This document shows, piece after piece, positions 5,700 through 54,027 of a stretch of DNA of 64,000 bases (position 1 is its first letter; every line of letters begins with the position of its first letter). This DNA comes from Haliotis rubra (Eukaryota). The stretch covers positions 434,001 through 498,000 of the forward strand of contig NW_025767141.1 of NCBI RefSeq assembly GCF_003918875.1. The letters run 5' to 3'. A program made the translations under genes and the position numbers. The notes beneath the pieces are model-generated. The model saw nothing but the letters and a program-made list of their open reading frames with translations, had not been told where the DNA came from and made no database searches.

Positions 5700-6660
5700 C
5701 TGGGTCATTTGCTACACGGTTTAATCGGTCAGTCTGTGACGCAATAATACCAAGGAAGCTCCAGGTCGTGCCAGAAGGTCCAACAAATTGTCAGTGGGAT
5801 TGAATTCTGGAGGTATAGCTGTATAAATCAGAACAGGAATGTTTCCATTCCTAAAAGATTTTTATTATGTGTGGACTAGCATTATCATGTGGAAATTGAA
5901 GATACTGTAAAGGTTAACCCCGACTTACATCAAAACACTGTTGGAAGAGTGCATGAGAATGTTTGCACACAAAGTTATGGCTATCTGTTATCACAAGAAA
6001 GCAGCTTGATTTCGACACGAAACCCAGTTTTGTATCAGTGACGCAACTACCTTGCGCTCTGTCGCCATGTCCACTCCACCTTGAAGCGTTTGTCATCAGC
6101 AGTCGCCATTTTCAAAACTCCGATTCACTCACTCACTTTAAACAGATAATGTAATTCGTCTGGAATGCTGCCCAGATCATAACACATGATCTCTCTTCTG
6201 TACAAAACTTCAACATCCGGTCTGCAGTAAATTATGGTTACATGTTCTCAATTCTGAGACTTGGATATGCATATTTTCATTAAAATGTATCTCCTAAATC
6301 CAGTTAATCCTGAAAATGAGTGAATGAGTGTCACCCTCAGATGGTATCCTTGTCACTGGATAATATCTATCTGGGTGAGTGAGTTTAGTTTTACGCCATA
6401 CTCTGCAATATTCCAGCTATATGGCGGCGGTCAGTAAATAATCGAGTCTGGACCAGACAATCAGTGATCAACAGCATGAGCATCGATCTGCGCAATTGGG
6501 AACCGATGACATGTGTCAACCAAGTCAGCGAGTCTAACCACCCGATCCCGTTAGTCGCCTCTTACGACAAGCATGGGTTATCTGAAAATGAGCTCCAAAT
6601 GATGACCTCCTCGCACGAGCCAACTGAGAACAATATGCACTACATGCATTAGCGGTCGTT
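5700..6660 (-). mobile_element. Highly degraded Tc1-like transposase relic interrupted by a SINE
   Basis: Minus-strand fragments VMIWAAF (about 6165-6185), HDNASPH (about 5870-5890) and PAIPPEFNPTDNLLDLL (about 5770-5820) echo Tc1 DDE motifs. Boundaries approximate. Confidence 0.6.
6321..6581 (-). mobile_element. SINE family 1 with a 3' extension
   Basis: Family-1 body at 6375-6581 plus about 45 bp of extra tail; flanking direct repeat CTGAAAATGAG. Confidence 0.88.
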
Positions 6661-7250: not shown

Positions 7251-7834
7251 NNNNNNNNNNNNNNNNNNNNNNNNNNNNNNNNNNNNNNNNNNNNNNNNNN
7301 NNNNNNNNNNNNNNNNNNNNNNNNNNNNNNNNNNNNNNNNNNNNNNNNNNNNNNNNNNNNNNNNNNNNNNNNNNNNNNNNNNNNNNNNNNNNNNNNNNNN
7401 NNNNNNNNNNNNNNNNNNNNNNNNNNNNNNNNNNNNNNNNNNNNNNNNNNNNNNNNNNNNNNNNNNNNNNNNNNNNNNNNNNNNNNNNNNNNNNNNNNNN
7501 NNNNNNNNNNNNNNNNNNNNNNNNNNNNNNNNNNNNNNNNNNNNNNNNNNNNNNNNNNNNNNNNNNNNNNNNNNNNNNNNNNNNNNNNNNNNNNNNNNNN
7601 NNNNNNNNNNNNNNNNNNNNNNNNNNNNNNNNNNNNNNNNNNNNNNNNNNNNNNNNNNNNNNNNNNNNNNNNNNNNNNNNNNNNNNNNNNNNNNNNNNNN
7701 NNNNNNNNNNNNNNNNNNNNNNNNNNNNNNNNNNNNNNNNNNNNNNNNNNNNNNNNNNNNNNNNNNNNNNNNNNNNNNNNNNNNNNNNNNNNNNNNNNNN
7801 NNNNNNNNNNNNNNNNNNNNNNNNNNNNNNNNNN
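7251..7834. other. Assembly gap (584 N)
   Basis: Run of n characters. Confidence 1.
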
Positions 7835-13100: not shown

Positions 13101-15028
13101 GAACTGTGTTGAAAATCAGCGAGGCATGATCAGTGACAACCTTGGATTTAACGCCATGATCAGGTTGTTTGATGACTTGGGAGTAAAAATATCAGCATGA
13201 AACTCACCTGCTACTTTGACAGCATAGGATTATGAATGGATACCCACATAAATAAATATATAAATATTATATAATTATAAATGTGATACAAAACATTGGG
13301 AGAAAGCAAATAGATAATATACAGTATATATACCAGACATTTCGAGACAACAAAAACCTCATATACAGGGGATAACTCTGCACAAACTAATGAAAAAGGA
13401 TTAACGGAGTTGTCTCTCTTGGGTGAAACCAAGCACTTGATAGCTGGCCAGGGTTGTTTATACTAGAAATCCAATTAAACATATTCCTAAAATTCTCAAT
13501 AATTTCTGGTCATACTATATAAGTCATAACAGTACACGTGATGACGTGAATGGTGGTCGGATGGTACTTAGCCGACGTCTTAGAGTTGTCATGTGGCAGA
13601 GTTAGGCTTTAAACATGAAATATACCAACGGACTTCCTGAGCCAACTGACGTTAAACAACAAGCAAACAAACAAACGTGCTAAACGCCCGAGACCTGAAT
13701 CACTCAAAGCTTTCCACAGACAGACTGACATACAGACTTTAACTTGACTCAAGTCATATTTGACCTCTGGCCAAATACATATGATGTTGGGCTTAATGGA
13801 TATAATTATAAATACAGTATAGTGTTATTTGTACAGGACAGTATCCAGAACAGGAATGATTCTAAATATTTGACTCAATTGTTGTTTCCTACTTTTAAAG
13901 ATTCACAGACATATTTTGCTAATTTTCTCTGACAATCAATATCAAATAACTCAACCAATTGAAAACTGATCGTTTAACATAATATTTCTTAATAGACATA
14001 CATCTCAATTTTCTACAGAAAGGACAAATTATTACAAAATGAAACTTAAATGCCGTGTTATTACTTGAATAATGTTCAAATCGGCGTTAAAACCGACTGA
14101 CTGACTCACTCACTCACTCAGTAGAGGGAGACCCATGAAGATCCGGGTTAGAATTGATCTTCAGTATCCCATGCATGTCGTAAGAGGCGACTAACGGGAT
14201 TGGGTGGTCAGACTCGCAGACTTGGTTGACGCATGTCATCGTATCCCAATTGCGTAGATCGATGCTCAAGCTGATGATCACTGGATTGTCTGGCCCAGAC
14301 TCGATTATTTACAGACCGCCGCCATATAGCTGGAATATTGCTGAGTGCGGCGTAAAACTATACTCACTCACTCACTCAATAGAGGAACATCTACTTACTA
14401 TCAGCGTCGTAGGCATCGTACGAATACTGCAGTTCGCCGATGGTGAAAGTCAAGTCTTTGTCAAGGTCAGCGGACGCAAACATCACCTTGGCGGTTTCAT
14501 TGTAAGGCCGAAGGTCTATAGTCACCCTTAAATATATGTTATTGAATAGATTGTACGGAGTGCAAATACATCATAAATTGTCCCGTTAAAACCATACTGA
14601 GTCATGACAAGCAGGATTGTTTAAGTCATTATTCATAGTCACCTCGTATTTCAGCCGTATCGTGGCTGAAACAAGCTATCCATTACTAATACATATACTT
14701 AGACTATAAAACCTGGCGACAAAGAGCAATAAAAGAACCACAGTATCAGAGATACAGATTGAAAGCTTGTCTGTGGGCATATAACACCATCATCACACAA
14801 TGGGCCATGGGGACTTCTGCTTCCTGCATGGTGCCCAAATTGAATTTACCTGATTAACGGTTAAAATGTAATTAACTGTTTCACAACTGTTCTTGAATAA
14901 TACACCAAGAATGATCAATAAGACTGAGAAGTGACAATGAACAGTTATAGTAATACACATATGCTCACTCACTGACTGGCTCCCTGGGAGACACAAAGAG
15001 CCAACACAACGCTGACCAGAAAATACAT
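10107..15028 (-). CDS. Secreted four-EF-hand calcium-binding protein, paralogue A, 143 aa (molluscan EF-hand/shell-matrix-like family)
   Basis: Five GT-AG exons (15028-14973, 14526-14399, 12643-12479, 11010-10964, 10142-10107) total 432 nt and join in frame: MYFLVSVVLALCVSQGASQVTIDLRPYNETAKVMFASADLDKDLTFTIGELQYSYDAYDADNDGVVSRTEYTTFTAHLNPEMFALTHALYDIYDSDKDDVLTLYDFNALYKLMDTNENGRVSEKEYIHWWTVTLEALDHLHHP*. Loops: DLDKDLTFTIGE, DADNDGVVSRTE, DSDKDDVLTLYD, DTNENGRVSEKE. Confidence 0.92.
10632..10912 (+). mobile_element. Repeat with internal tRNA-like A/B boxes (second copy at 37996-38175, minus)
   Basis: GTCGCGGTGGCTGAGTGGGTTA and GGGTTCGAATCC boxes. Leader and trailer align with the reverse complement of 37996-38175. 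Confidence 0.65.
10699..10787. mobile_element. PIF/Harbinger-type MITE (same family), nested in a tRNA-like repeat
   Basis: Degenerate TIRs matching 15820-15926; TSD CTG (10696-10698, 10788-10790). Confidence 0.75.
12718..13060 (-). mobile_element. SINE family 1 (composite of two copies)
   Basis: Family consensus with an internally duplicated segment. Confidence 0.85.
14128..14378 (+). mobile_element. SINE family 1, full length
   Basis: Matches the family consensus; TSD TAGAGG; ends about 20 bp from the exon 2 donor of EF-hand paralogue A. Confidence 0.9.
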
Positions 15029-26781: not shown

Positions 26782-27017
26782 TTGGTTGATAGTGTAACGT
26801 CGCACTCAGCAATATTCCAACTATATTGCGGCGGTCAGTAAGTACTCAAGTCTGGACCACACAATCCAGTGATCAGCAACATGAGCATCTATCTACGCCA
26901 TTTGGGATATGATGACAATTGCCAACCAAGTCAGCGAGCCTGACCACCCGGTCCCGGTAGGCGCCTCTTTGGCAAGCATGGGTTGCTGAAGAACACTTTT
27001 AAAACGGATGTTCACGG
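26782..27017 (-). mobile_element. SINE family 1
   Basis: Similarity to the family consensus. Confidence 0.82.
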
Positions 27018-29601: not shown

Positions 29602-31820
29602 TGTTACGAGAGTGTGTTTTTGTAATTTGTATTATCATTGATAAAGGGATAGTTGTCATTGAGTCACAATGTATAGAGTTTTGAGTGTGGGTTGTAGGTC
29701 ACATCTTGCATCATGTACGTTCAATGGCAATAGTATTTTTTAGCGGTACGCCTTTTTGATAGCGCTCCAGAGTTGCCTCCCTTGGCTTTATTTTGTTTTG
29801 ACTCCCGGTCGAAGGTTCAACATGATTCGTGAATGTTGTCAGTGGATAAAGAATGTTCTAGACACTGTGTCAGTATATATACTGAACATCATTGAAAACG
29901 CACCACTTATAAACGTTCAGATTATTAAAAGCACGTGTAAGGAATTGATATTTTTTGAGTGGATAATAACAGATGGACGACTGACAAAACAACAACACAG
30001 AAAAGACGCTCATTCATTGAAATGTTCCACAGTCAGAAAGGATCAAACACACGTGGGGTCAAATCGAAATGTCAATATCGCGTGTGACCGCCATTTGCAT
30101 TGACACATGCAGTTCAAAGTCTCCTCATTGAGTCAAAAAAGCGTCCGAATAGAGTTCTTGAGGATGGCATTCCATTTCTGCAGTAGAGCAGCCTCAAGTT
30201 CCCGGATGTTTCGCATCTGTTGTCGCCGCGAAAGACTTTGACCAATTTCGTCCCACAAGTCCTCCATGGGGGATACATCTGGCGACTGTGCTGGCCAATG
30301 AATAACCTGGATGTGTTGCTGGGCCAGATACTGCATTGAAAGTATTAATGTGTGTGCCCGTGCGTTGTCCTGTTGAAACGTATTGACATCTTGGTGGTGA
30401 TTTAAGACAGATACGATGTGATTCTGAAGAATCTGCTCACGATAATAAAGGGCATTAACTCTCCCTTGACAGACGTGAAGGCAGTCCTGTGATTGTAACT
30501 TATTCCAACCCAGACCATGACACTCCCACCACCCAAAGGTCTATCTGAACCATACACTCATCAGCATAAGGTTCACCACGTCTACGCCAAACACGTAATC
30601 GGCCGTCAGTATTACGTAGATGATGACGTGATTCGTCAGTGACTACCGCACCATGCCATTGTTGTAACCTTTACTGAAAATGCTTGCTAGCCCTTTGTAT
30701 ACGCTCATTACGGTGTCTGTTAGTCAGAATTGGTCCAACGTAAGGACGTTGAGCATGGAGCCCTGTAGCTTGTAGACGGCGTCGCATGGAGTCAGCGCTG
30801 ATGACCCCCACGTCAACCTTGAACTAGTGCAGCAGTCCTGGCAATCGGCAGTGTTCAATCACTGATATGGACAAGGTCAATATTGGGATCCTGATGGAGC
30901 GTCGTAACACGTTGTTGCCAAGGTCATTGCAGGTCACGGGTGCTGCCTGTCTACTGATGTCGTCTATGAAGCCTAACGATGGTGGAGTGGCCAAGTCCAA
31001 GTTGTCGAGCAATATCCCAGCTGCTGGTGCCAACCTGAATCATGCCTAGTGCACGTTCTCTTTCGTGAGGTGTTAACCGCGGCATCTCTGTCCTCGTTTC
31101 ACAATCGTTAGTGAAGCAGTGAGAATCGGTTCTCATACACTTGCTTTTAATGTCACAGTCAGTATAATTTCAGAATTAAATTCGCACTTTTTTCATGGCG
31201 GGCTGCATGTTGATGCATTTTGGAATAAAGTGTCATACTGTGGACAGGAATTTGTTTCTAAAGCATTTTTTCAACTGGACATGCCCTTCGACTTCATGTT
31301 AGTTATATTCATTGATCATTGTCATGCTGAAATCCATCTTGATGAAAATATGGACAATTTTAGACTGGTGCGTTTTCAATGATGTTCAGTATATATAGGC
31401 TGGTTGTTGTGTTGACACACACACACACGGAATTACACGTCACTTTTCATATCACGGGAGTTGTGTACATCTTTCTGCCGTCACCTGCCTACCGTCGTCG
31501 TCTGTCTGTCAACATCGTCAAGACCGATTGTCTCGTCAAGACCGACTGTCTACTGACATTGTAAACTACCTTTAGTTTGTATATCTGCACTCACTGTAAA
31601 TGCCAAGGCTCGTGGTGAGTTGATACCTTATATTTGTGACCCATTACTTTAGATTTGTGACTCAATTGCATTGTACTAAATATCTGTATTGTCATCTATT
31701 GTAGCTTGCTCATTGTTTGCTCAATATATTATAGAATATTTTAGACTTGTGTGTTTTATATTTTGCTGGTTCAAAGGGGACTCTTAAACCTTTTTGTCAC
31801 GGCAATTATTAACCGTAACA
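29602..31820. mobile_element. Solo-LTR-like element (about 710 bp) with nested Tc1
   Basis: Termini TGTTACG...CGTAACA with 4-bp TSD ATTG (29598-29601, 31821-31824). The empty site GCGATTGCTCCTG is present in the paralogous flank at about 39757-39769. Confidence 0.85.
29882..31389 (-). mobile_element. Tc1/mariner element copy B, near full length, non-functional transposase
   Basis: Same TIRs, TA flanks. HTH start MPRLTPHERERALGMIQVG; DDE motifs VTDESR, QQDNAR and SPDVSPMEDLWDE, with stops and frameshifts. Confidence 0.93.
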
Positions 31821-33429: not shown

Positions 33430-33711
33430 GTCACCCTCAGATGGTATCCTTGTCACTGGATAATATTTATCCGGGTGAGCGAGTTTAGTTTTACGCCGCA
33501 CTCAGCAATGTCCCAGCTATATGGCGGCGGTCTGTAAATAATTGACCAGACAATCCAGTGACCAACAGCACGAGCATCGATATACGCAATTGGGAACCGA
33601 TGACATGTGTCTTCCAAGTCAGCGAACCTGACCACCCTATCAATTTAGTCGCCTTTTACGACAAGCATGGGTTTATTACTGAAGATCAATTATAACCCGG
33701 ATCTTCACGGG
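33430..33711 (-). mobile_element. SINE family 1 with a 3' extension, in intron 1 of GS-like copy 1
   Basis: Full body plus the same 45-bp extension as at 6328-6375. Confidence 0.88.
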
Positions 33712-34750
33712 TTACGTGGTTTAGTGTGTCAGATATGGTCGGATGTAAAACTTGAACGTTTAAGCACCCAAAAACGGGAAAGAGAGGTAATGGAGATGAT
33801 AACTACGTATGTTTATTCTTGGTGCTCAATGCATTCTTAGGCTGTTTCTAGCAACTTACCTTTTGACTTTCCTTAAAGAAATCCAATGAAAGTAGCCCTT
33901 AAAACCTTGGCACCAGCAGCTTGTGATCTGTCCGTATGAACTGTACGATGAGTGGTGAAAACATACAAAGATTCCATGTTGGGTTGTTAGGAAAAAGAGA
34001 TTGACACTGCATACTGTTTACTGCACGATCAACGAAGGGTTCAAAGCGTACGAAATCAAAGCTTAAATTGTTTACTCATTATTTGTTTGCGAGTATATGC
34101 AGGATGGTCCGGGGTTTTTTTCTTCTTAGAAACAAACACTGACTGGTAGCTTTAAAAGTATTTGTTCCATGCTCTTGTAAACACTACAGGACAATGAAAT
34201 TGCTCGATAATGTGAAGGACCAGTGTGACCTCGTCCCGGTTTATGTACTGGAAAAAAAATAGAATCACGCCATTAACCTAAAATATGTTCCAGACTAGTG
34301 CTAGGCCACTGTGACCCTACGCATGTGTTCAACATAGATATTCAATTCAGATAAATCATACATTTTTCTCTCTGCTCTCTGATTGCTGTCAGTCATCGCC
34401 AGGCAGATTTACTCAATAAGAAAGACGATTCTTTTCTCACGTATATATGATTAAATCGGCCCGAGAGAGGCAGTTGTACATACACGTATATGATTAAATC
34501 GGCCCGAAATTCATACACGTATAGATTAAATCGGCAGTTGTACATACACGTATATGATTAAATCGGCCCGAGATTCGTCTCCATAGCTCCACAGGAACCG
34601 ATGGAGATGTATGAGATCTTTTATTCGGCGAATTATATTATCTGACAGTGTTCAAGCCAGGATTGAAAAATTGCAATGTTTCCCGGGTTAATTGTTCAGA
34701 AATAATCAAAGAGTCCAAATAATGGTCAATTTTATTTTTTTTGCAGACCC

Positions 34751-36351
34751 ATGTCTCAAATGAAAGTCTCCTTCGACTATTTACGACTAACTATCTGTGA
34801 TATATCTGGAAAGTCCAGAGGAAGAGTTGTTCCTTGCCGCCATGCCGAACACACCTGTAGAACTGGAGTCACAGTAGGAGTAGGTATGTGTTGTCATCTG
34901 TAACGTTACCCTTTCTGTGTTGAAATTGTAAGAACCGATGGAGGTTGAACCAGTGGGATTGGTGGCTGAGACTCGTTAGTAAGATCAGTGGTATCAGTCT
35001 TGTGACTGGATGCCCGTTCCAGACATAGTACCACACCTCCATCATATAGCTATTACGTTAACAAAAGAAAATACATTTCTTAGTAAAGATGCTCATCGCA
35101 CTTAAGTATAATTGTCGAGGTTGGAATATTTAGGGTTCCATGGTATTCTGTAGTGGTAAACAACAAACAATAACAATAATAACCATGAATGTTTGAAAAG
35201 GCTGTATTGAAATAAACATACTCATAAGTAGAACATCCTTGTCTGGAAATATTGCAGGCGTTCCAAGGGCACTGCGAAGGGATTATGGATTTGTAATCGT
35301 TCCCGACCTCAGCACAATGAAGACTATTTCCTGGGATGGAGGTGAACAGTACAAGGTGGCCGAGGTCATATGTGATGCGTATTGGTTGAAAGACAAGACA
35401 CCTCTTACATTCTTTCCGAGGCATGCTGCTCAACAACAGCTTCAACGATTGGCAGATAATGGGTATGCAATGTTATCAGGATTTGAGATGGAATACATGT
35501 TGTATTATAAAAGCCTACCTGCGTCGGGGAAACACCGAATGTATCACTTGGACCATACTCAACACAGCGAATTTCTCTATGCCTTAGACAAAGGTATGCG
35601 TAATGCAGGTGTTGATGTAGAGAACTTCCATACAGAGTGGGACGCTGGGCTCTACGAAAGCGTTTTAAAGGCATCCAAAGGCATCACTGCTGCTGACCAG
35701 GCTTTTACCTTTCGAAATGGAGCCCTTCAAGTTGCAAGTAAGCATGCAGATTATGGAGTAAGCTTTAAAGCAAGACAAAAATCGGGTGAAGTCGGAATGC
35801 ATTATAATCATTCAGTGTTGTCGATGGAAAGTGGCGAAAATATTTTCAGTGATTCAAGCAAGCCCGATGGTATATCAGATTTGGGAAGATGTTGGCTCGC
35901 AGGTCTGCTGAAACATTCAAGGGCCCTTTCAGCCTTCTGGTGTCCGACTGTAAATTGTTATGATCGACTCCATCGTCCAAGGAGACCAGGGAATATCAAC
36001 TGGGCGTGTGAAAATCGTCTTTCATGTTTCCGCGTTAAAGCAGATACTGATAAAATAGGGGTCTACTTTGAGAACCGGATTCCAAGCGGCAGCAGCAATC
36101 CATATCTGACTATGGCTGCCACGATAGCAGCAGGTTTAGACGGGGTATTCAATAACTTGGATTGTCCTCCTGAATGCCCAGACCCAGATGATCCATCTTC
36201 TAACTCCACAGCAGCTAATACTCTACCAACCTCTCTCCCCGAGGCTCTGTCTGCTCTCCAGGCAGATACTGACATGGTGAATATTCTCGGGAAGGAGCTG
36301 GTGGACTGGTTTGTTGCAGTTGCAAAAAAAGACATTGAAATAAGCAGCTGA
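34751..36351 (+). CDS. Lengsin-like / type I glutamine synthetase-fold protein, copy 1, 408 aa
   Basis: Coding exons 34751-34883 (MSQMKVSFDYLRLTICDISGKSRGRVV..., GS N-terminal beta-grasp motif) and 35258-36351, joined by a phase-1 GT-AG intron. GS catalytic motifs: GFEMEY, HTE..GLYE, GMHYNHS, YDRL, ENR..FRV, FENR.P....NPYL. Confidence 0.93.
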
Positions 36352-38284
36352 TACATTACTTCCAGCGAATGTATTCCAAGCCACTAATTCTCTACTCTCG
36401 TAAAAGGTATAATGGAAAACTGTTTTAGTAACTGATAATATCGATTGAGTTAAGATAATTTATTACAGTCTGGTTGGTTCATTCGATTAAGTCCACAGTC
36501 AGGAGAGCCTTTCCTATGTACATCCTATATGTGGTGTGTAACCTATCTTGTACATTCGTATGCTACCATCGGACCCCATATGACGTATCTGTTTCCAAAT
36601 AGCCTGATGACATCACTAACAACAACACTGCAATATAATTAGAAAGCTGTCGACACGAATATATACAATTTCACACAAACAATATATTGCTTACTTGTCT
36701 AAAGACAATAGTCATATAATTCCGTCATAGTTTCCATATGTAGACTATCCATAAACCATTTTGTATAAGCAAACGACAATACCATCATAGCATACAGGCT
36801 TAGAACTGATCATACCATATATGTATCTGAATCCCATTCTATAGCATCCTCTCTGTTGGACTAAATTGGCCATTCTGACAAAGGAGTACTGAAGCCTCAT
36901 CCAGATTCATATCCGGTCAAAGAACTCACAAATCTACAGTTCCACAATATTTCTCACATGGAGTCAGAAAATCAACATTAAATGAAAAATAAAGACATGG
37001 TGACAGTGAATTAAAACATGATTTATTCCAAAAAGTATAAACAAGGATTCAAATGCCGATGTGACGCACTATGTGTGTATTCCTATCATTTATTTATTGA
37101 ATGTCAATTTTTTAAATCAGCTAGAAACGAATTAATGTACACTCTATTGTTAATTACGAAAATAGCTTGTGCTGCTGTTTGGCAACGCAGACATGTGGAC
37201 AAGAATGTTAGGAGTGTACATGTATATAATGAAAACAACACGGTTTGAGTGAGCAGTGTTAATGTGAATACGTTACCTTTCTATCGTTAGATATATTTAT
37301 TGAAAATAAACATTGATGTGAAACTACTGGAAAGGGAGTTATTTTTAAATTATGATTAAATGTGTTCAAATATAAGCTAAAGACAAAGACACCCAATTAT
37401 GTTTTCATTGTGTCATTAACGATTTCACTTCACAACAGATTTTGCATTCGATGTTACTTTCGTCATTTTCACACTTCAGTGATTCGTTGTGAGCCAATAT
37501 TTCTATTGTTTTTCAATATTCTAGTAGCAGTGTGATTGCTCTTATGCAATCAGACTGAGAATGTGTCGTCCACAGCGTAAAGTTTTAACGACATACCTCA
37601 AATAATTGAACTCGGACAGAGATACCCATGACATTCATAGTCTGTGATTTGCGGACTTCTGAAACTTGTTTCTGCAGGCATATACTGTTAATGATTGTCC
37701 CCGCACAAGGCGCCTTAGATCAAGAACACACGTCCTGGTTCCAGTTTCAGAAATATTCAATATGGTTTTAGAAGCTTGGGCTACAATTGGTAACGAGCAA
37801 CTCGTCCGAAGAGGCCAATATTTCGTGTCACCTGGCTCATGGCATTTGAATGTAACCCGAATCTGCAAACATGGTTACTGGATGGTTTGCTTTAGACTCC
37901 GTTACTTACAGGCTGAAGTCATATCGCTTAGATATTGGATTCAAAATACACGTTTTTCTGTATAATATTCTCTGCCGCTTTAGACGCCAATGGGATGTAA
38001 CACATGTTATATTGCGGACAGATATAGTTCAGTACAGATTCTAGTACTTTTGTTGGGTTGAGTCCTATCCGGGATACGAACCCACACCCTCAGAGTCAGG
38101 CACGGAATCGCCAGCACACAAAGTGAGGCTAACTCAGTCAGCCGCCGCGGCTTCCACAAAAATAGAAGTCGGACAACTGGTAGTCTTGACCACGGACTTT
38201 GTGTACCCCTCTAATACGTGCAAATTAGCACGGTTCCCATTTGGTATCTTCCCATAAGACAGACCTCCCAAAAGACAGAGTGCA

Positions 38285-39640: not shown

Positions 39641-41789
39641 TGTGAAAATCCGGGTTTCAGTCTGTCTTCCCCATCACATGCCTGTCGTGAGACGCAACTA
39701 GGGTTAGTTTGCGTGCACCTTTGTTGATGGACAATACGAAGGGGATATTCTATTTAGCGATTGCTCCTGCGGCGTTCATATTGCCAATATAAACTCTAAG
39801 GTTAACTGTTATCGTAATTTTAATATCGTCTAAACACCGTACAAAGTTAGAAACAATGTACGAAAAATATATTTTACCAGCTTTTGATTATTGTGGCCAT
39901 ATCTGGGACAACTGTATAAAATAACAATGCCACCTGCGAGAAAACTTCAATCTTGACACTTTGACATGTGGAGCAGTCCGTGTAATAAACACACTTTTTT
40001 ATATAAAACGACCAAATTAACACCGGACGACATTACTGATCTTAATCCACCTACAGTGTTCGAATCCAATTTGTATAACCTATAACTAGATACCAATCCA
40101 CCGTACAAACTATACATTGCAAACAAACTATCATTAAAAGTCTCAGGAAATCTTGAAATGATAGTGTCAAGCTATGGATCGAACATGCCAACGAATATAC
40201 CAGCTGTCCTTTGTTGATGGGTTTGATATAATGTAAATGTATATGGCGTTGTATTGTCGTTATATGGCTGAAATAGTGCCTATGAACCATTTCATTTTAA
40301 ATCACATATTGTTAAATACTCGATAACACCAGAAAGCCTCAATTTTTGCATCAAGATGTCACTTATTCAGCTACTAGTGTTTGACAGATGAGCGATTGTG
40401 CTGATTGTTGTAACATGTGCAACTTGTTTATGTAGTAAAGTCCTCGCAAAATTTAACCCTCATTTGTATGAATAGTTATTTGGTTAATAGTTGTTTTGTG
40501 ACATGATTAGGTTTCATTATCGTCATCAATTCGTGTAACATAATATTTGTCATAATTTTCCTTTTTTTCAATATACATTTAGAATATTAAGCTATAATTA
40601 TTTTGGTCACGTGTTCTTGTCTAAATAGGTTTTGTATTAAAGGAACATGTGCCGTCATAATTCATCAGCTGAGCGACCAGTTGTAATCCAGCTTTCTGCA
40701 CCGACCGAGAAGGTAGGCTGTCCACTATCTGTTCCTGATACAAATCGACACCACCATAACTGAAGGGTTCGTAGTAACCTTTATTTTTCAACTCACCATT
40801 GTTTGTTTTTAAGCCACACTCTACAATACGTCGTTCCCATATGACGGTGCTCTGAACATAATGGACATCAGCATCTACTACGTGACTGGGGTACATGACA
40901 TGTATCATCAAAGCTGACGCGCAAACCCTGGCCTGTCAGTCGCCCCAAAGCCACATAAAAAGACGAAACCGTCCCGCAAACGAAATAACTACGGGAGCGG
41001 TTCCCCTAGCATGGAATCCAATGACAGTAGCGCTTACAACCTTGCCATCACCATGTAATACTGTTTACTTGACTAACGAAGGGTTCTAAACGTACGAAAT
41101 CATCAAAAGCAAAAATCAACTATAATGATAATTTGTTTGTGAGTAGGATGATGGTGGGGGTTAGGGTGGTGGGGGGAAGAGGCGATATCCTGATATCCAC
41201 TGTACTTACAAACATACACAGAGACTGGTACCTTTTAAATTAGGCTTTCCGTGCTCTTGTGAACACTACAGGACGATGAAATTGCTCCGTAATGTTACTT
41301 AGGACCAATGTGACCTCGTCCAGCTTTATGTACAGGCAAAAATGTAGAATCATGCCAATAAGTTCAAATATCTTCCTGATTAGGTTTTATTGTGCTAAGC
41401 AGCTGTGACTGCACGCGTCCGTTCAACATAGATATGCAATTCAGACACATTGTTCTGACTCAATGCCATCTTTTTCAGTCATCGCCAGGCATGTTTACAT
41501 AAACACCTTATTTTCGGTAGGACTCGGACAGCTGAACGAACCAACGACCTTTTCCATTAATACCCAGTTCACAGAGGCAGTTGTATACATAGGATTTTAA
41601 TCTGCCAGAGATTTGTCTCCATAACTCCATAGGAATCGATGGAGAAGTATAAGATCAACTGCCCGGCGAATTATATTATCTGACTGTGTTCAAACCCACG
41701 ATTGACAACAAGCAATCGCAATGTTTCATGGGTAAATTGTTCAGAAATAATCAATGAGTACAAATAATAGTTAATTTATTTGCAGAATT

Positions 41790-44059
41790 ATGTCGCAGAT
41801 GAAAGTCTCCTTCGACTATTTACGACTAACTGTCTGTGATATGTATGGTAAGTCAAAAGGAAGAATTGTTCCTAGCCACCATGCCGAACACACCTGTAGA
41901 ACTGGAGTCACAGTAGGAATAGGTATGTGTTGTCATCTGTAATGTTTCCCTTTCTGTGTTGAAATTGTAAGAATGTGGGCACTCGGCATAGCGCAGCTAA
42001 ACTAATTGGATTGGGAGGTGAGGTTGCTAGTTGACGTGTTGCCAGTTCCAGACCTATCTATACACCTCCATCATATAGCTAGAATATTACGTTAAAGAGA
42101 AGAAAAATACATTGTTAGTGAAGTTGTTTATCTTACTTAAGTTCATTTGTATATATGTGGTTATATTTTTCTTTCGTTGTTTTATGTTGTTTTCTTCCTT
42201 GTTCTCTTTGTTTTGTTTTCGTTTGAGCAGAAGAGATGGGTTGTTTGATTTCTGTTGTTTTTCATCTCGGCTGAATTTGACATTAATGCAATGGTTTTGT
42301 TTATTTTCCTGTATTTGCGCAAGTCCTTTTTCCAACTTTTATACTGTTAACCCCACGAATGAAAGCTCCCTTGTAAAATATAACTGTGTTATCCACACGA
42401 AAGCAAAACATCCCTTTTTGCTTTGTTAAAATGACAGGAATACAGTTTTAAGTTGCAGAATAACTGATCGTCGAGCCTGGACTTTTTACAGTGATATTCT
42501 GTGGTGGTAAACAACAAACACTAAGAATCATAATCATGAAAACCGCCTCCGTTGTGTAGTGGTTAGAGCGTTCGCCCGGAGAGCGGAAGTTCGTGGGTTC
42601 GATCCCCGGCCGCATCATACCAAAAGACGTTAAAATAGGGTACTTGTTGGTCCCTGCCTGGCGCTCGGCATTAATGGGTACATCAAGGACTGGCCGGCTC
42701 AGAATCAGTATAATGTGTCTGAGTGGGGTATTCATGTTTAACTGCGGCATGGTATCTCAGTGAGCTAACACTATAAAACCAGCTTAAGTCTGGGCTAGTA
42801 CAAGCAGCAAAACATACATACGCATGCACGTTGTCATATGAGCTAAATGTTCTTAAGTGCTATGTTAAACCCCATTTCACCTCACCATAACATGAATGTT
42901 TGAAAAAGCTGTATTAAAACAAACATAATCATCAGTAAAATCATCAATGTCTATAAATATTGCAGGCGTTCCAAGGGCACTTCAAAAGGGCTATGGCTTT
43001 GTAATAATTCCCGACCTCAGCACAATGAAGACTATTTCCTGGGATGGAGGTGAACAGTACAAGGTGGCCGAGGTCATATGTGATGCGTATTGGTTGAAAG
43101 ACAAGACACCTGTTACCTTTTTCCCGAGGTATGCTGCTCAACAACAGCTTCAACGATTGGCAGACAATGGGTATGCAATGTTATCAGGATTTGAGATGGA
43201 ATACATGTTGTATTATAAAGGCCTACCTGCGTCGGGGAAATCCCGAATGCATCACATGGACCATTTTACACACAGCGATTTTCTCTATGCCTTAGACAAA
43301 GGTATGCGTAATACAGGTGTTGATGTAGAGAACTTCCATACAGAGTGGGACGCTGGGCTCTACGAAAGCGTTTTGAAGGCATCCAAAGGCATCACTGCTG
43401 CTGACCAGGCTTTTACTTTTCGAAGTGGAGCCCTTCAAGTTGCAAGTAAGCATGCAGATTATGAAGTAAGCTTTAACTCAAGACAAGAAACGGGTGAAGT
43501 CGGAATGCATTACAATCATTCAGTGTTGTCGATGGAAAGTGGTGAAAATATATTCAGTGATTCAAGCAAGCCTGAAGGTATATCAGACTTGGGAAGATGT
43601 TGGCTCGCTGGACTTCTGAAACACTCGAGGGCTCTTTCAGCCTTCTGGTGTCCGACTGTATATTGTTATGATCGACTCCACCGCCCAAGGAGACCAGGGA
43701 ATATCAACTGGGCGTGTGAAAATCGTCTTTCATGTTTCCGCGTTAAAGCAGATACTGATACAATAGGGGTCTACTTTGAGAACCGGATTCCAAGTGGCAA
43801 CAGCAATCCATATCTGACTATGGCTGCCACGATAGCAGCAGGTTTAGACGGGGTATTCAATAACTTGGATTGTCCACCTGAATGCCCAGACACAGAAGAT
43901 CCATCTTCTTACTCCACAGCAGCTAATACTCTACCCACGTGTCTCCTCGAATCTCTGTCTGCTCTCCAGGCAGATACTGACATGGTGAATATTCTCGGGA
44001 AGGAGCTGGTGGAATGGTTTGTTGCAGCTGCAAATAGGCACATTGAATTAAACAGCTGA
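41790..44059 (+). CDS. Lengsin-like / GS-fold protein, copy 2, 408 aa
   Basis: Coding exons 41790-41922 and 42966-44059. Same exon lengths (133 + 1094 nt) and motifs as copy 1; open throughout. Confidence 0.93.
42541..42885 (+). mobile_element. tRNA-derived SINE family 3 (Meta/MESC-domain-like) in intron 2 of GS-like copy 2
   Basis: tRNA head (TGTAGTGGTTAGAGCG, GGTTCGATCCCC), body CATACCAAAAGACGTTAAAA...CCTGCCTGGCGCTCGGCATT, TSD CATAA(T)CATGAA. Absent from copies 1 and 3. Confidence 0.88.
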
Positions 44060-45760
44060 TACATTACTTCCAGCGAATGTATTCCAAGCCACCTATTCCC
44101 TAATATAATAGATAACTGTTTTAGTGGCAGACAATATTAGTTGAGTTACGATAATTTGTTAGGGTCTGCTTGGTTTATTCTGTAAAGTCCACAGTAAGGA
44201 GAGCCTTTCCTATGTACATCCTATATGTTGTGTGTAACCTGTGTTGTACATTCGCATGCTAAACATCGGACCCCCATTTGACGTATCTGTTTCCAAATAG
44301 CCTGATGACATCACTAACAACAACACTGCAGTATAATTAGAAAGCTGTCGACACGAATATATACAATTCCACACAAACAAAGTATGGCTTACCTGGATAA
44401 AGACAATAGTCATATAATTCCGTCATAGTTTCCATATGTAGACTATCCATAAACCATTTTGTATAAGCAAACGACAATACCATCATAGCATACAGACTTA
44501 GAACTGATCATACCATATATGTATCTGAATCCCATTCTATAGCATCCTCTCTGTTGGACTAAATTGGCCATTCTGACAAAGGAGTACTGAAGCCTCATCC
44601 AGATTCATATCCGGTCAAAGAACTCACAAATCTACAGTTCCACAATATTTCTCACATAGAGTCAGAAAATCAACATTAAATGAAAAATAAAGACATGGTG
44701 ACAGTGAATTAAAACATGATTTATTCCAAAAAGTATAAACAAGGATTCAAATGCCGATGTGACGCACTATGTGAAAATTCGTATCATTTATTTATTGAAT
44801 ATCCATTTTTAAATCAGCTAGAAAGAATTAATGTACACTCTGCTTAAGAATTAATGTACACTCTGCTTGTAATTCCGAAAATGGGTTGTGCTGCTATATG
44901 GCAACGCAGACATGTGGACAAGAATGTTAGGAGTGTACATGCATATATAATGAAAACAACACGTGAGTGAGCAGTGTTAATGTGTATACGTTTCCTTTCT
45001 ATCGTTAGATATATTTATTGAAAATAAACTTTGATGTGAAACTACTGGAAAGGGAGTTATTTTTAAAATTATGGTTAAATGTGTTCAGATATAAACTAAA
45101 GACAAAGACACCCAATTATGTTTTCATTATGTCATTAACGATTTCACTTCACAACAGATTTTGCATTCGGTGTTACTTTCGTCGTTTTCTCACTTCAGTG
45201 ATTCGTTGTAAGTCAATATGTCTATTGATTTTCAATATTCTAGCAGCGGTGGCAACAGTAGACATAAAGAATTTAAGTACATGCATTTATAAGGGGAAAA
45301 CACGGTTTGAGTCAGCAATGTTAATGTGTATACGTTTCCTTTCTGTCACTAGATATATTTATTGAAAATAAACATTCATCTGAAACTATTGAAAAGGGAT
45401 TTCTAAGTTATGATTAAATGGGTTCATTCCTTTTCATGAGAATAAAATATATCTAAATACAAACAAAAGAGCTATGGTAGTAACTATGGAAAGAGCCACC
45501 ATTTTTCTTTTTTCCAAGTAAAAACACAGATTTATGCAGGAAAATTGTTCCGATCATTTCGAGTCGGGCACATATCACAGAGCAGGGAGAATAGATTATC
45601 CCTGGACAGAGACATGCATACGTTGGGTATGAAAATCCGAAAGCTAGGCTGAAAAAGAAGTAGAACCCACGAGATTCATTTATACTGCATCTTTACATGT
45701 TGAAACTTACTGTCAGTGGTATTTTTAACATAGATTAAAACAAGTCCGATGTGATAAATA

Positions 45761-48109: not shown

Positions 48110-49440
48110 CTGAACATCATTGAAAACGCACCACTTACAAAAGTTCAGATTACTAAAAGCACGTGTAAGGAATTGATATTAAGGTGGATAATAACAGATT
48201 GACGACTGACAAAAACAACAACACAGAAAGACGCTCATTTATTGAAATGTTCCACAGTCAGAAAGGATCAAACACATGTGGGGTCAAATCGAAAAGTCAA
48301 TATCGCGTGTAACCGCCATTTCCATTGACACACTGAAGTGCAACGTCTCCTCAATGAGTCAATAAGCGTCCGAATAGAGTTCTTGAGGATGGCATTCCAC
48401 TTCTGCAGTAGTGCAGCCTCAAGTTCCCGGATATTTCGCATCTGTCTTCCCCGAAAGACTTTGACCAATTTCGTCCCACGAGTGCCCCATGGGGGATACA
48501 TCTGGCGACTGTGCTGGCCAATGAATACCCTGGATGTGTTGCTGGGCCAGATACTGCATGGGAAGCCTAGCTGTGTGTGCCCGTGCGTTGTCCTGTTGAA
48601 AAGTATGGGTATCTTGGTGGTGATTGAAGAATGATACGATGTGATTCTGAAGAATCTGCTCACGGTAGCAAAGATATTAACTCTCCCTTGACAGACATTA
48701 GGGTCAGTTCTTTGATTATATCTTATTGCACCCAAGACCATGACACTCTCACCACCCAACGGTCTGTCTGAACCACACACTCATCAGCATAACGTTTACC
48801 ACGTCTACGCCAAACACGTAATCGGACGTCAGCATTACGTAGGTGAAGAAGTGACTCGTCAGTGACTACCACACCATGCCATTGTTGTAAACTTTACTGA
48901 AAATGCCCCTTAGCCCATTGTATACGGTCATTATGGTGTCTGTCAGTCAGAATTAGTCCAACGTAAGGACGTCGAGCATGGAGCCCTGTAGCGTGTAGAC
49001 AGCGTCGCATGGTGTCAGCGCTGATGACCCCACGTCGACCTTGAACTAGTGCAGCGTCCTGGCAGTCGGCAGTGTTTGATCACGGATATGGTCAAGGTCA
49101 ATATGGCGATCCTGACGGGAGGTCGTGACACGTTGCCAAGGTCGTTAAAGGTCACTGGTGCTACCTGTCTACTGATGTCGTCTATGAAGCCCAACGATGG
49201 TGGAGTGGCCAAGTCCAAGTTGTGGAGCAATATCCCTGCTGCTGGTGCCACCCTGAATCATGCCTAGTGCACGTCCTCTTCCGCGAGATGTTAACCTCGA
49301 CATCTCTGTCCTCGTTTCACAATCGTTAGTGAAGCAATGAGAATCGGATCTCATGCACTTCATTGATCATTGTCATGCTGAAATCCATCTTGATGAAAAT
49401 ATGGACAATTTTAGACTGGTGCGTTTTCAATGATGTTCAG
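48110..49440 (-). mobile_element. Tc1/mariner element copy C
   Basis: Same TIRs, TA flanks, degraded transposase. About 170 bp deleted upstream of the ORF relative to copy B. Confidence 0.92.
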
Positions 49441-51904: not shown

Positions 51905-54027
51905 ATGTCTCAGGTGAATGTCTCCTTCGACTATTTACGACTAAGTATCTGTGATATATCTGGAAAGTCCAGAGGAAGAGTTGTTCATTCCCGTCATGCC
52001 GAGCACACCTGTAGAACTGGAGTCACAGTAGGAATAGGTATGTCTTGTCATCTGTAATGTTTCCCTTTCTGTGTTGAAATTGTAAGAATGTGGGTACTCG
52101 GCAGGATTGGTAGGTGAGACTCGTTGGTTAGGTCAGTAATATCATTCTTCCATGGATCGATGTTTGTGACCTGTTGCCAGTTCCAGACATATTTATACAC
52201 CTCCATCATATAGCTGGCATACAGTGTTTGCCCTTAAACCTGAAAATCTGCAAGCCCTAAGAACCCAGAACCATAAAAAGTCATGGGTCCTGATCAAAAT
52301 ATGTAGGCCCTATATTTTAGCTACAATATAATTTCCAGCAAACAAAAAATATAACTAACAAGCTGAGTTTAAGAGTTTAATTTAGAAATTTAAACTAGAA
52401 ATTACTGAATGCTATTTTCTCAAAAATATTACTTTAAGGTTATTGGGGATGAAAAAGTTGTCGGCCATTAGGACCGGCAAAGCTGTGGGTCCGAATTGTT
52501 TTCAGTCGGCTTCTGGTCTAAGAACTGATTTCAAACGTTGCTAGCATAATACGATAAACAGAATAAAATACATTGCCTAGTTAAGTTGTTTATCGCCCTT
52601 TATCTCCTTCTTATGTGTGTAGTTATTTTTGTTTAGTTGTTTTCTTTCCTGTTCTTTTGTCTTGTTGTTTGTGTGAGTTGGAGGTGGGCTGTTTGATTTC
52701 TGTTGTGTTTAATTTCGACTGAATTTGACATAGTTTGACTTAATGCAATGATGTTGTTAAGTAGCAGTATAACTTATCGTCGAGCCCAGATAACTGATTG
52801 TCTTGTCGAGGATGGAATATTGAGGGGCCCATGGTATTCTGTAGCGGTAAACAACAAACAATAACAATCATAACCATGAATGTTTTGAAAAGCTTTATTG
52901 AAGTAGAACATCATTGTCTGGAAATATTGCAGGCGTTCCTGTGGCACTGCGAAGGGATTATGGATTTGTAATAATTCCCGACCTCAGCACAATGAAGACT
53001 ATTTCCTGGGATGGAGGTGAACAGTACAAGGTGGCTGAGGTGATCTGTGATGCGTATTGGTTGAAAGACAAGACACCTCTTACCCTTTTTCCGAGGTATG
53101 CTGCTCAAAAACAGCTTCAACGATTGGCAGATAATGGGTATGCAATGTTATCAGGATTTGAGATGGAATACATGTTGTATTATAAAGGCCTACCTGCGTC
53201 GGGGAAATATAAAATGTATCACTTGGACCATTTTCAACACAGCGAATTTCTCTTTGCCTTAGATAAAGGCATGCGCGATGCAGATGTTGATGTTGAGAAC
53301 TTCCATTCAGATTTGGATGCAGGGCTCTACGAAAGCGTTTTAAAGGCATCCAAAGGCATCACTGCTGCTGACCAGGCTTTTACCTTTCGAAGTGGAGCCC
53401 TTCAAGTTGCAAGTAAGCATGCAGATTATGAAGTAAGCTTTTACTCAAGACAAGACACGGGTGAAGTCGGAATGCATTATAATCATTCAGTGTTGTCGGT
53501 GGAAAGTGGTGAAAATATTTTCAGTGATTCAAGCAAGCCCGATGGTATATCAGATTTGGGAAGATGTTGGCTTGCTGGACTTCTAAAACACTCAAAGGCT
53601 CTTTCAGCCTTCTGGTGTCCGACTGTAAATTGTTATGATCGACTCCACCGTCCAAGGAGACCAGGGAATATCAACTGGGCGTGTGAAAATCGTCTTTCAT
53701 GTTTCCGCGTTAAAGCAGATACTGATAAAATAGGCGTCTACTTCGAGAACCGGATTCCAAGCGGCAGCAGTAATCCATATCTGACTATGGCTGCCACGAT
53801 AGCAGCAGGTTTAGACGGGGTATTCAATAACTTGGATTGTCCTCCTGAATGCCTAGACACAAATGATCCATCTTCTAACTACCACAGCAGCTAATACTCT
53901 ACCAACCTCTCTCCCCGAGGCTCTGTCTGCTCTCCAGGCAGATACTGACATGGTGAATATTCTCGGGAAGGAGCTGGTGGAATGGTTTGTTGCAGCTGCA
54001 AATAGAGACATTAAAATAAACAGCTGA
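51905..54027 (+). pseudogene. Lengsin-like / GS-fold protein, copy 3, with a +1 frameshift near the C-terminus (truncated allele or sequencing error)
   Basis: Exons 51905-52037 and 52933-54027. An extra A at about 53881 (TCTAACTACCACA versus TCTAACTCCACA in copy 1) gives a stop at 53892-53894. The homologous tail AANTLPTSLPEAL...RDIKINS* is intact in the shifted frame up to TGA 54025-54027. Confidence 0.75.
52222..52540. mobile_element. hAT-type MITE in intron 2 of GS-like copy 3
   Basis: TIR-like CAGTGTTTG / CAAACGTTG, 8-bp TSD CTGGCATA / CTAGCATA. Absent from copies 1 and 2. Confidence 0.8.

Follow-up and report, generated by a model that had tools for sequence, protein, structure and literature searches.

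The locus studied here raises the question of whether three neighbouring copies of a class I glutamine synthetase (GS)-fold gene in the abalone Haliotis rubra have diverged preferentially in the loops around a predicted acceptor pocket, and, if so, whether selection, relaxed constraint or gene conversion is responsible. A first-pass annotation, made from the DNA letters alone, had proposed that the differences among the copies are concentrated in three short stretches, and that these reflect selection for different amine substrates. We examined this proposal using gene models, family and fold assignment, loop mapping onto solved homologues and codon-based rates across Haliotis.

Gene models and the state of copy 3

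The window (the whole stretch of 64,000 nucleotides that was analysed) has a G+C content of ~39% and is eukaryotic in character, with introns and transposon debris. It contains three tandem two-exon genes of the class I GS fold ("lengsin-like"), all on the forward strand, each with an exon 1 of 133 bases and an exon 2 of 1094 bases that are joined by GT/AG splicing into a 408-residue product. The introns of copies 1, 2 and 3 are 374, 1043 and 895 bases long, respectively. The exons, and the three variable stretches (spots 1 to 3) as located in copy 1, are as follows.

34751-34883, + strand: copy 1 exon 1, codons 1-44 and the first base of codon 45, with the GT donor next
35258-36351, + strand: copy 1 exon 2, codons 45-408 and stop, Gln-synt_C catalytic domain, AG acceptor at 35256-35257
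35260-35283, + strand: spot 1, codons 46-53 (VPRALRRD), Asp50'-loop hairpin in the N-terminal domain
35533-35562, + strand: spot 2, codons 137-146 (HRMYHLDHTQ), Tyr179 position and adjoining segment
35767-35784, + strand: spot 3, codons 215-220 (KARQKS), Asn264 loop
41790-41922, + strand: copy 2 exon 1, supported by the match of the spliced product and by the exon 1 tree (both below)
42966-44059, + strand: copy 2 exon 2, spots at 42968-42991, 43241-43270 and 43475-43492
51905-52037, + strand: copy 3 exon 1, located by tblastn
52933-54027, + strand: copy 3 exon 2, spots at 52935-52958, 53208-53237 and 53442-53459

When spliced and translated, copies 1 and 2 give exactly XP_046582663 and XP_046582689, respectively, both named "lengsin-like [Haliotis rubra]", and an RNA contig of a sister copy shows splicing of the same kind as in copy 1. 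In copy 3, an additional base at 53881 causes a frameshift 47 codons before the end, and the open frame stops at 53894. It also carries E171D and W172L (53310-53315) at the metal-binding glutamate site, where E171 is kept in 108/110 family members. The extra base was present in no public-run contig crossing the site, these contigs being copy 1-like, copy 2-like or from another organism. Copy 3 is probably a young, decaying pseudogene, with a frameshift that is seen in the assembly only. In public run X7, an RNA contig passes from the last bases of exon 1 directly into exon 2. Up to and including spot 2 it agrees with copy 3 except at three neighbouring bases (52940-52942, codons 47-48), where the contig encodes PR, as do copies 1 and 2, and copy 3 encodes PV. 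A copy 3-type gene, at least, is therefore transcribed and spliced in the organism from which the run derives.

The lengsin-like family comprises ~25-30 loci in the H. rubra genome. Two of these, with ~60% identity, lie further along the same contig on the + strand, 31-46 kb past the end of the window (528939-529985 and 542677-543724 in contig coordinates), so that the cluster extends beyond the three copies. Further clusters of the family are found on four other contigs.

Family, fold and catalytic core

Copy 1 matches a single Pfam domain, PF00120 (Gln-synt_C; E=1.5e-62, 212 bits against a cut-off of 24), to which copy 2 is also matched (E=2.1e-57). An alignment-based AF2 model of copy 1 reached a pLDDT of 93.7, with values of 95-97 in loops 2 and 3, and the best Foldseek matches of this model were GS I-alpha (archaeal, Bacillus-type) and the Pseudomonas 1-naphthylamine ligase NpaA1 (TM 0.87-0.91). 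The PF00120 score and the GS-like fold of the model place the protein within the class I GS fold. A family-profile search of the PDB returned NpaA1 as the top match (1.5e-93), with lengsin 2J9I at 1.8e-45, and pairwise matches were likewise stronger to GS 8OOW (2e-40) than to lengsin 2J9I (2.8e-14).

The residues that bind metal, ATP and glutamate are kept in the abalone proteins (E121, E123, E171, E178, H226, R281, R298, R303, E316 and R318; reference ligands St E129, E131, E212, E220, H269 and E357 with Arg321/339/344/359). These ten ligands were checked in all eight intact proteins of the triplet clade, with copy 3 carrying the E171D change described above. By comparison with GS, Asp50' (MsGS D52) lies opposite a gap or Gly43, the equivalent of Ser53' is Val46, and the flap residue Glu327 (MsGS E302) is replaced by Arg286, with glutamate present at this position in no family member compared. 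The Asn264 loop is two residues shorter than in GS, and its Asn-Gly pair lies opposite a gap. The proteins also fall below the TIGR00653 GlnA equivalog cut-off (170 bits vs 429) and the NCBIfam cut-offs for PuuA (168 vs 650) and type III glutamate--ammonia ligase (178 vs 470). None of the marks of a bona fide GS, namely Asp50'/Ser53', the Glu327 flap and a TIGR00653 score above cut-off, was found.

What was found is the residue pattern described for bacterial gamma-glutamyl-organic-amine ligases (GoaS; PMC11335346), in which the ATP, glutamate and metal sites are kept and Asp50' and the flap Glu are gone. Organic-amine ligases have lost the latter two residues while keeping the other sites, and none of them uses ammonium (PMC11335346); Streptomyces GlnA2 and GlnA3 differ from GS at Ser53, Tyr179, Asn264 and Glu327 (PMC8998196). 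Since the abalone proteins combine a retained core with the loss of Asp50' and the flap Glu, as these ligases do (PMC11335346, PMC8998196), it is reasonable to predict from their residues that they ligate glutamate to an acceptor other than ammonia. The suggestion in the first-pass annotation of an amine rather than ammonia as substrate fits this combination of an absent Asp50', a flap arginine and an intact core (the pattern of PMC11335346).

The closest parallel is with the GoaS compared here (NpaA1 8WWU, AtdA1, PuuA, PA5508 and Streptomyces GlnA2/GlnA3), which share with the abalone proteins the GS I fold, the kept sites, the two losses and substituted ammonium-site residues. However, the abalone gene is an animal gene with an intron, and has an arginine rather than a hydrophobic residue at the flap. 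Class I-alpha GS (8OOW and B. subtilis 4LNI; TM 0.89, 28% identity) has the same domain order and catalytic core, whereas the abalone proteins lack its Asp50', Ser53', Asn-Gly pair of the Asn264 loop and Glu327 flap. Vertebrate lengsin (LGSN, 2J9I) is regarded as non-enzymatic. The abalone proteins resemble it by NCBI name, as eukaryotic class I GS relics and by a weak match, but differ in keeping all catalytic ligands and match 2J9I much more weakly than they match GS 8OOW. To our knowledge, no animal lengsin-like class I GS member has a known reaction or enzymatic data. A literature search found no study of these abalone loops. Expansions of lengsin-like genes to 7 and 13 copies have been described in tubeworms (PMC8789280), and a lengsin gene is listed in a study of abalone growth (PMC11758661).

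Position and divergence of the three loops

To place the spots in solved structures, we combined pairwise and profile alignments with the published loop ranges of 8OOW (M. shengliensis GS), which are 51-65 for the Asp50' loop, 146-156 for the Tyr179 loop, 229-240 for the Asn loop and 299-304 for the Glu flap (PMC10799026). Within the Asp50' loop, spot 1 corresponds to MsGS 55/56-63 in the alignment, and its R51 lies opposite the feedback arginine (MsGS R61, BsGS R62'), which in MsGS locks the flap in glutamine feedback (PMC10799026). The aligned counterpart of codons 42-49 in NpaA1 is V68'-F75', part of the loop that lines the amine tunnel; unlike NpaA1, the triplet clade has lost the ~12 residues that follow in this N-terminal loop (V68'-M81'), which are present in other abalone paralogues. 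In spot 2, the Tyr179 position (MsGS Y154, NpaA1 V201) corresponds to residue 138 in the profile alignment and to residue 141 in the phmmer pairwise alignment. Spot 3 aligns to MsGS 230-235, inside the Asn loop. The assignment of the spots to the Asp50', Tyr179 and Asn264 loops, which the first-pass annotation had proposed, is thus supported by sequence homology to 8OOW. In solved homologues these loops wall the acceptor (ammonium/amine) side of the bifunnel, one of them being contributed by the neighbouring subunit. NpaA1 chooses its substrate by means of an N-terminal loop supplied by the neighbouring subunit and of the Tyr179 position, where V201 sets the preference for aniline vs naphthylamine (PMC11335346), and spots 1 and 2 of the abalone proteins would correspond to these two elements.

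The motifs quoted in the first-pass annotation were recovered at their positions in copy 1, with the variants reported for the other copies. In copies 1, 2 and 3, the RALRRD segment of spot 1 (35266-35283, codons 48-53) reads RALRRD/RALQKG/VALRRD, with R/R/V at site 48. Spot 2 reads HRMYHLDHTQ/SRMHHMDHFT/YKMYHLDHFQ, with H/S/Y at site 137, and spot 3 reads KARQKS/NSRQET/YSRQDT. The long stretches described as identical among the copies (PDLSTMK...KDKTP and LQRL...LYYK) are invariant in all three, at residues 60-93 and 105-129.

Of the 24 spot codons, 14 vary non-synonymously among the H. rubra copies and 2 only synonymously, compared with 49 and 44 codons, respectively, outside the spots (Fisher one-sided p=0.0075). 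The density of non-synonymous change is 0.58 per codon in the spots vs 0.13 elsewhere. Over the whole gene, 63 codons vary non-synonymously and 46 only synonymously. The proposed clustering therefore holds as a local excess of replacements, but the spots contain 14/63 of the variable codons, and other replacement clusters occur at codons 14-30 of exon 1, 160-172 (copy 3 only), 352-374 and in the C-terminal tail (394-407). When copy 1 is compared with copy 2, 17 of the 72 spot bases are changed, while divergence is 5.6% in the adjacent 3' flank and 5.1% in the rest of exon 2; the spots exceed both the flank rate (p=3e-7) and the synonymous rate of exon 2 (p=0.012).

Evolutionary rates were estimated from nine genes (three from H. 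rubra and two each from H. asinina, H. rufescens and H. cracherodii) in a gap-free alignment of 408 codons, from which the additional base in copy 3 had been left out. Pairwise dN/dS was 0.17-0.25 between species and 0.3-0.6 between paralogues. Under a codon-likelihood model with one synonymous rate and omega estimated by partition, omega was 1.26 in the spots vs 0.26 elsewhere (2dlnL 60.5, p=7e-15), the former not being significantly above 1 (p=0.18). The difference persisted in the six genes from species other than H. rubra, for which the windows were set a priori (0.84 vs 0.25, p=1.5e-5). In H. rubra only, spot omega rose to 2.6 (p=0.0012 vs 1), a value obtained with windows chosen on those same data. 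By spot, omega was 1.07, 1.12 and 1.58 for spots 1, 2 and 3, respectively. Loops in general do not evolve fast here, coil outside the spots having an omega of 0.25; of 15 coil segments, those bearing the spots had the three highest values (0.98, 0.80 and 0.65). The spot loops thus evolve at about the neutral rate, with the remainder of the protein under purifying selection, and this fast evolution is replicated in sequences independent of H. rubra. The original proposal of selection is partly supported: the spots evolve ~5x faster than the rest, but their omega of ~1 falls short of establishing selection for different amine substrates.

Site models, which the first-pass annotation had recommended as a check for dN/dS above 1, gave a nominal signal. 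In our own approximation of an M1a/M2a-type test, with relative branch lengths fixed, 2dlnL was 7.5-8.0 (p ~0.02, varying from 0.001 to 0.13 with branch scale), with 1-2% of sites at an omega of 4-5; the single-tree assumption of this test is violated by gene conversion. Site 137 was the sole site with a posterior above 0.95 (0.96-0.97), and sites 406, 48 (0.62-0.83) and 215 ranked next. Three of these top four sites lie within the spots (p=0.005 among variable codons). Positive selection on the spots is only weakly shown.

Explanations for the loop divergence

We are evenly divided on whether the loops of the acceptor pocket diverged after duplication, by being driven or allowed to do so, towards different acceptor preferences or kinetics. 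Under this explanation, the triplet proteins would be ATP-dependent gamma-glutamyl ligases with an acceptor other than ammonia; they retain the complete apparatus for binding two metals, ATP and glutamate and for forming gamma-glutamyl phosphate. After duplication, the pocket positions 137, 48, 215 and 219 may have been driven or permitted to diverge, while the loop scaffolds would be held by the invariant residues M139, H141, D143, H144, Q218 and L50 between the variable sites. The copies could then differ in acceptor preference or kinetics. The two H. asinina paralogues, which show no difference in spots 2 and 3, speak against it. Adaptive diversification of the loops, as the driven form of this process, is plausible rather than demonstrated, and we would put it at an even chance.

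Relaxed constraint alone is a lesser but serious possibility, which we consider somewhat unlikely. It would hold that loops of the ammonium site were left without much function once ammonia had been abandoned, and have since drifted neutrally. A spot omega indistinguishable from 1, both in the nine genes and in the six independent ones, is what such drift predicts, and the C-terminal tail (394-407), which contains no pocket element and holds site 406, evolves as fast as the spots (omega ~1.0). Some of the changes, moreover, come from copy 3, which appears to be decaying. However, 8/24 spot residues never change and are interleaved with hypervariable ones, and loops 2 and 3 are modelled with the high confidence noted above. 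At site 137, five different residues occur among the nine genes, close relatives of one another (H, S, Y, H, H, C, W, W, C), with the high posterior given above. Charge-changing replacements in the Asn loop are recurrent, with positive charge gained in one paralogue of each of three lineages at codons 211 and 219 (35755-35757 and 35779-35781 in copy 1), namely as E211G/E219K in H. rubra copy 1, E211K/E219K in H. rufescens b and E219K in H. cracherodii a. Finally, the divergence of the spots between copies 1 and 2 is four times that of the flank.

Gene conversion is active at this locus, and much of exon 2 has been homogenised. In the exon 1 tree, H. rubra copy 2 groups with H. asinina copy b across species (bootstrap 99), whereas in the exon 2 tree the two copies of H. 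asinina form a group of their own (100%). In the H. rufescens/H. cracherodii quartet, synonymous sites with the paralogue pattern lie in codons 66-134 and those with the species pattern in codons 188-382; E219K retains a paralogue-specific pattern in this tract, where the silent sites follow species. From copy 1 to copy 2, divergence is ~22% around exon 1 and in the DNA upstream (34533-35115 vs 41576-42150) but ~8% over exon 2 together with more than 1 kb of its downstream flank (35179-37500 vs 42887-45219). In a further comparison, exon 2 and the 3' flank formed a block of ~5-6% divergence, with 13-22% in upstream DNA. This sharp change fits a conversion or unequal-crossover tract that starts in the intron. 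Donor-templated micro-conversion was considered as a source of the spots and rejected, the loop motifs being found in 0/27 other paralogue loci of the genome.

These observations allow the spots to be read as a mosaic, in which exon 2 was recently homogenised while the spots either predate this and were spared or were imported from other paralogues, so that they would record age rather than selection. The conflicting trees, the switch of signal within the quartet and the step from 18-22% divergence upstream of exon 2 to 5-6% in exon 2 and its flank all favour such a history. Old patches should, however, hold synonymous differences as well, and the H. rubra copies show 9 non-synonymous and 0 synonymous differences in codons 112-154 and 6 and 0 in codons 196-226. 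With 15 replacement and 0 silent differences around spots 2 and 3, the evidence speaks against the spots simply having escaped conversion. A length of 18-30 bases is also short for a skipped conversion tract, and the lack of the motifs at the other paralogue loci argues against import, leaving this explanation improbable.

It is also very unlikely that the triplet encodes non-catalytic proteins of the lengsin type, with a fold kept for assembly or ligand binding and loops that serve as subunit or partner interfaces: the NCBI name, the flap arginine, the missing Asp50' and Asn-Gly pair and the alignment of part of spot 2 to a loop placed at the subunit interface (PMC10799026) are in keeping with such a role, but the ten residues that bind metal, ATP and glutamate all persist under an omega of 0.26, and the proteins are closer to active bacterial and archaeal enzymes (8OOW, NpaA1) than to lengsin in both the pairwise and the profile searches.

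Divergence of the acceptor-pocket loops after duplication, whether driven or allowed, would in itself be an ordinary pattern within a known enzyme superfamily. What the locus offers is a set of recent duplicates that differ almost only around the predicted acceptor pocket, with the core intact and the ammonia-specific residues gone. Copies 1 and 2, and sites 48, 137, 215 and 219, could serve as natural variants for testing what the predicted enzymes ligate to glutamate, and could help to explain the repeated lophotrochozoan expansion of the family. A broader and more doubtful proposal is that abalone possess ~25-30 gamma-glutamyl-amine ligases derived from class I GS, of which recent tandem duplicates are diversifying their acceptor pockets under selection. 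If so, these genes may represent a metazoan system for the conjugation of dietary, microbial or xenobiotic amines, analogous to bacterial GoaS.

The remainder of the window includes broken remnants of Tc1/mariner-type transposases between gene copies, at 30133-31136 and 48268-48780 (both - strand), recognised by matches to HTH_38 and, weakly, to DDE_3. At 7251-7834, 584 consecutive N represent an assembly gap or masked sequence. A repeat of ~200 bases with 70-85% identity occurs on both strands, at 33501-33712 and at least 10 other sites in the window (for example 1036-1232, 6401-6579, 14131-14345 and 26805-27017), and this scattered repeat looks like a SINE-type element.
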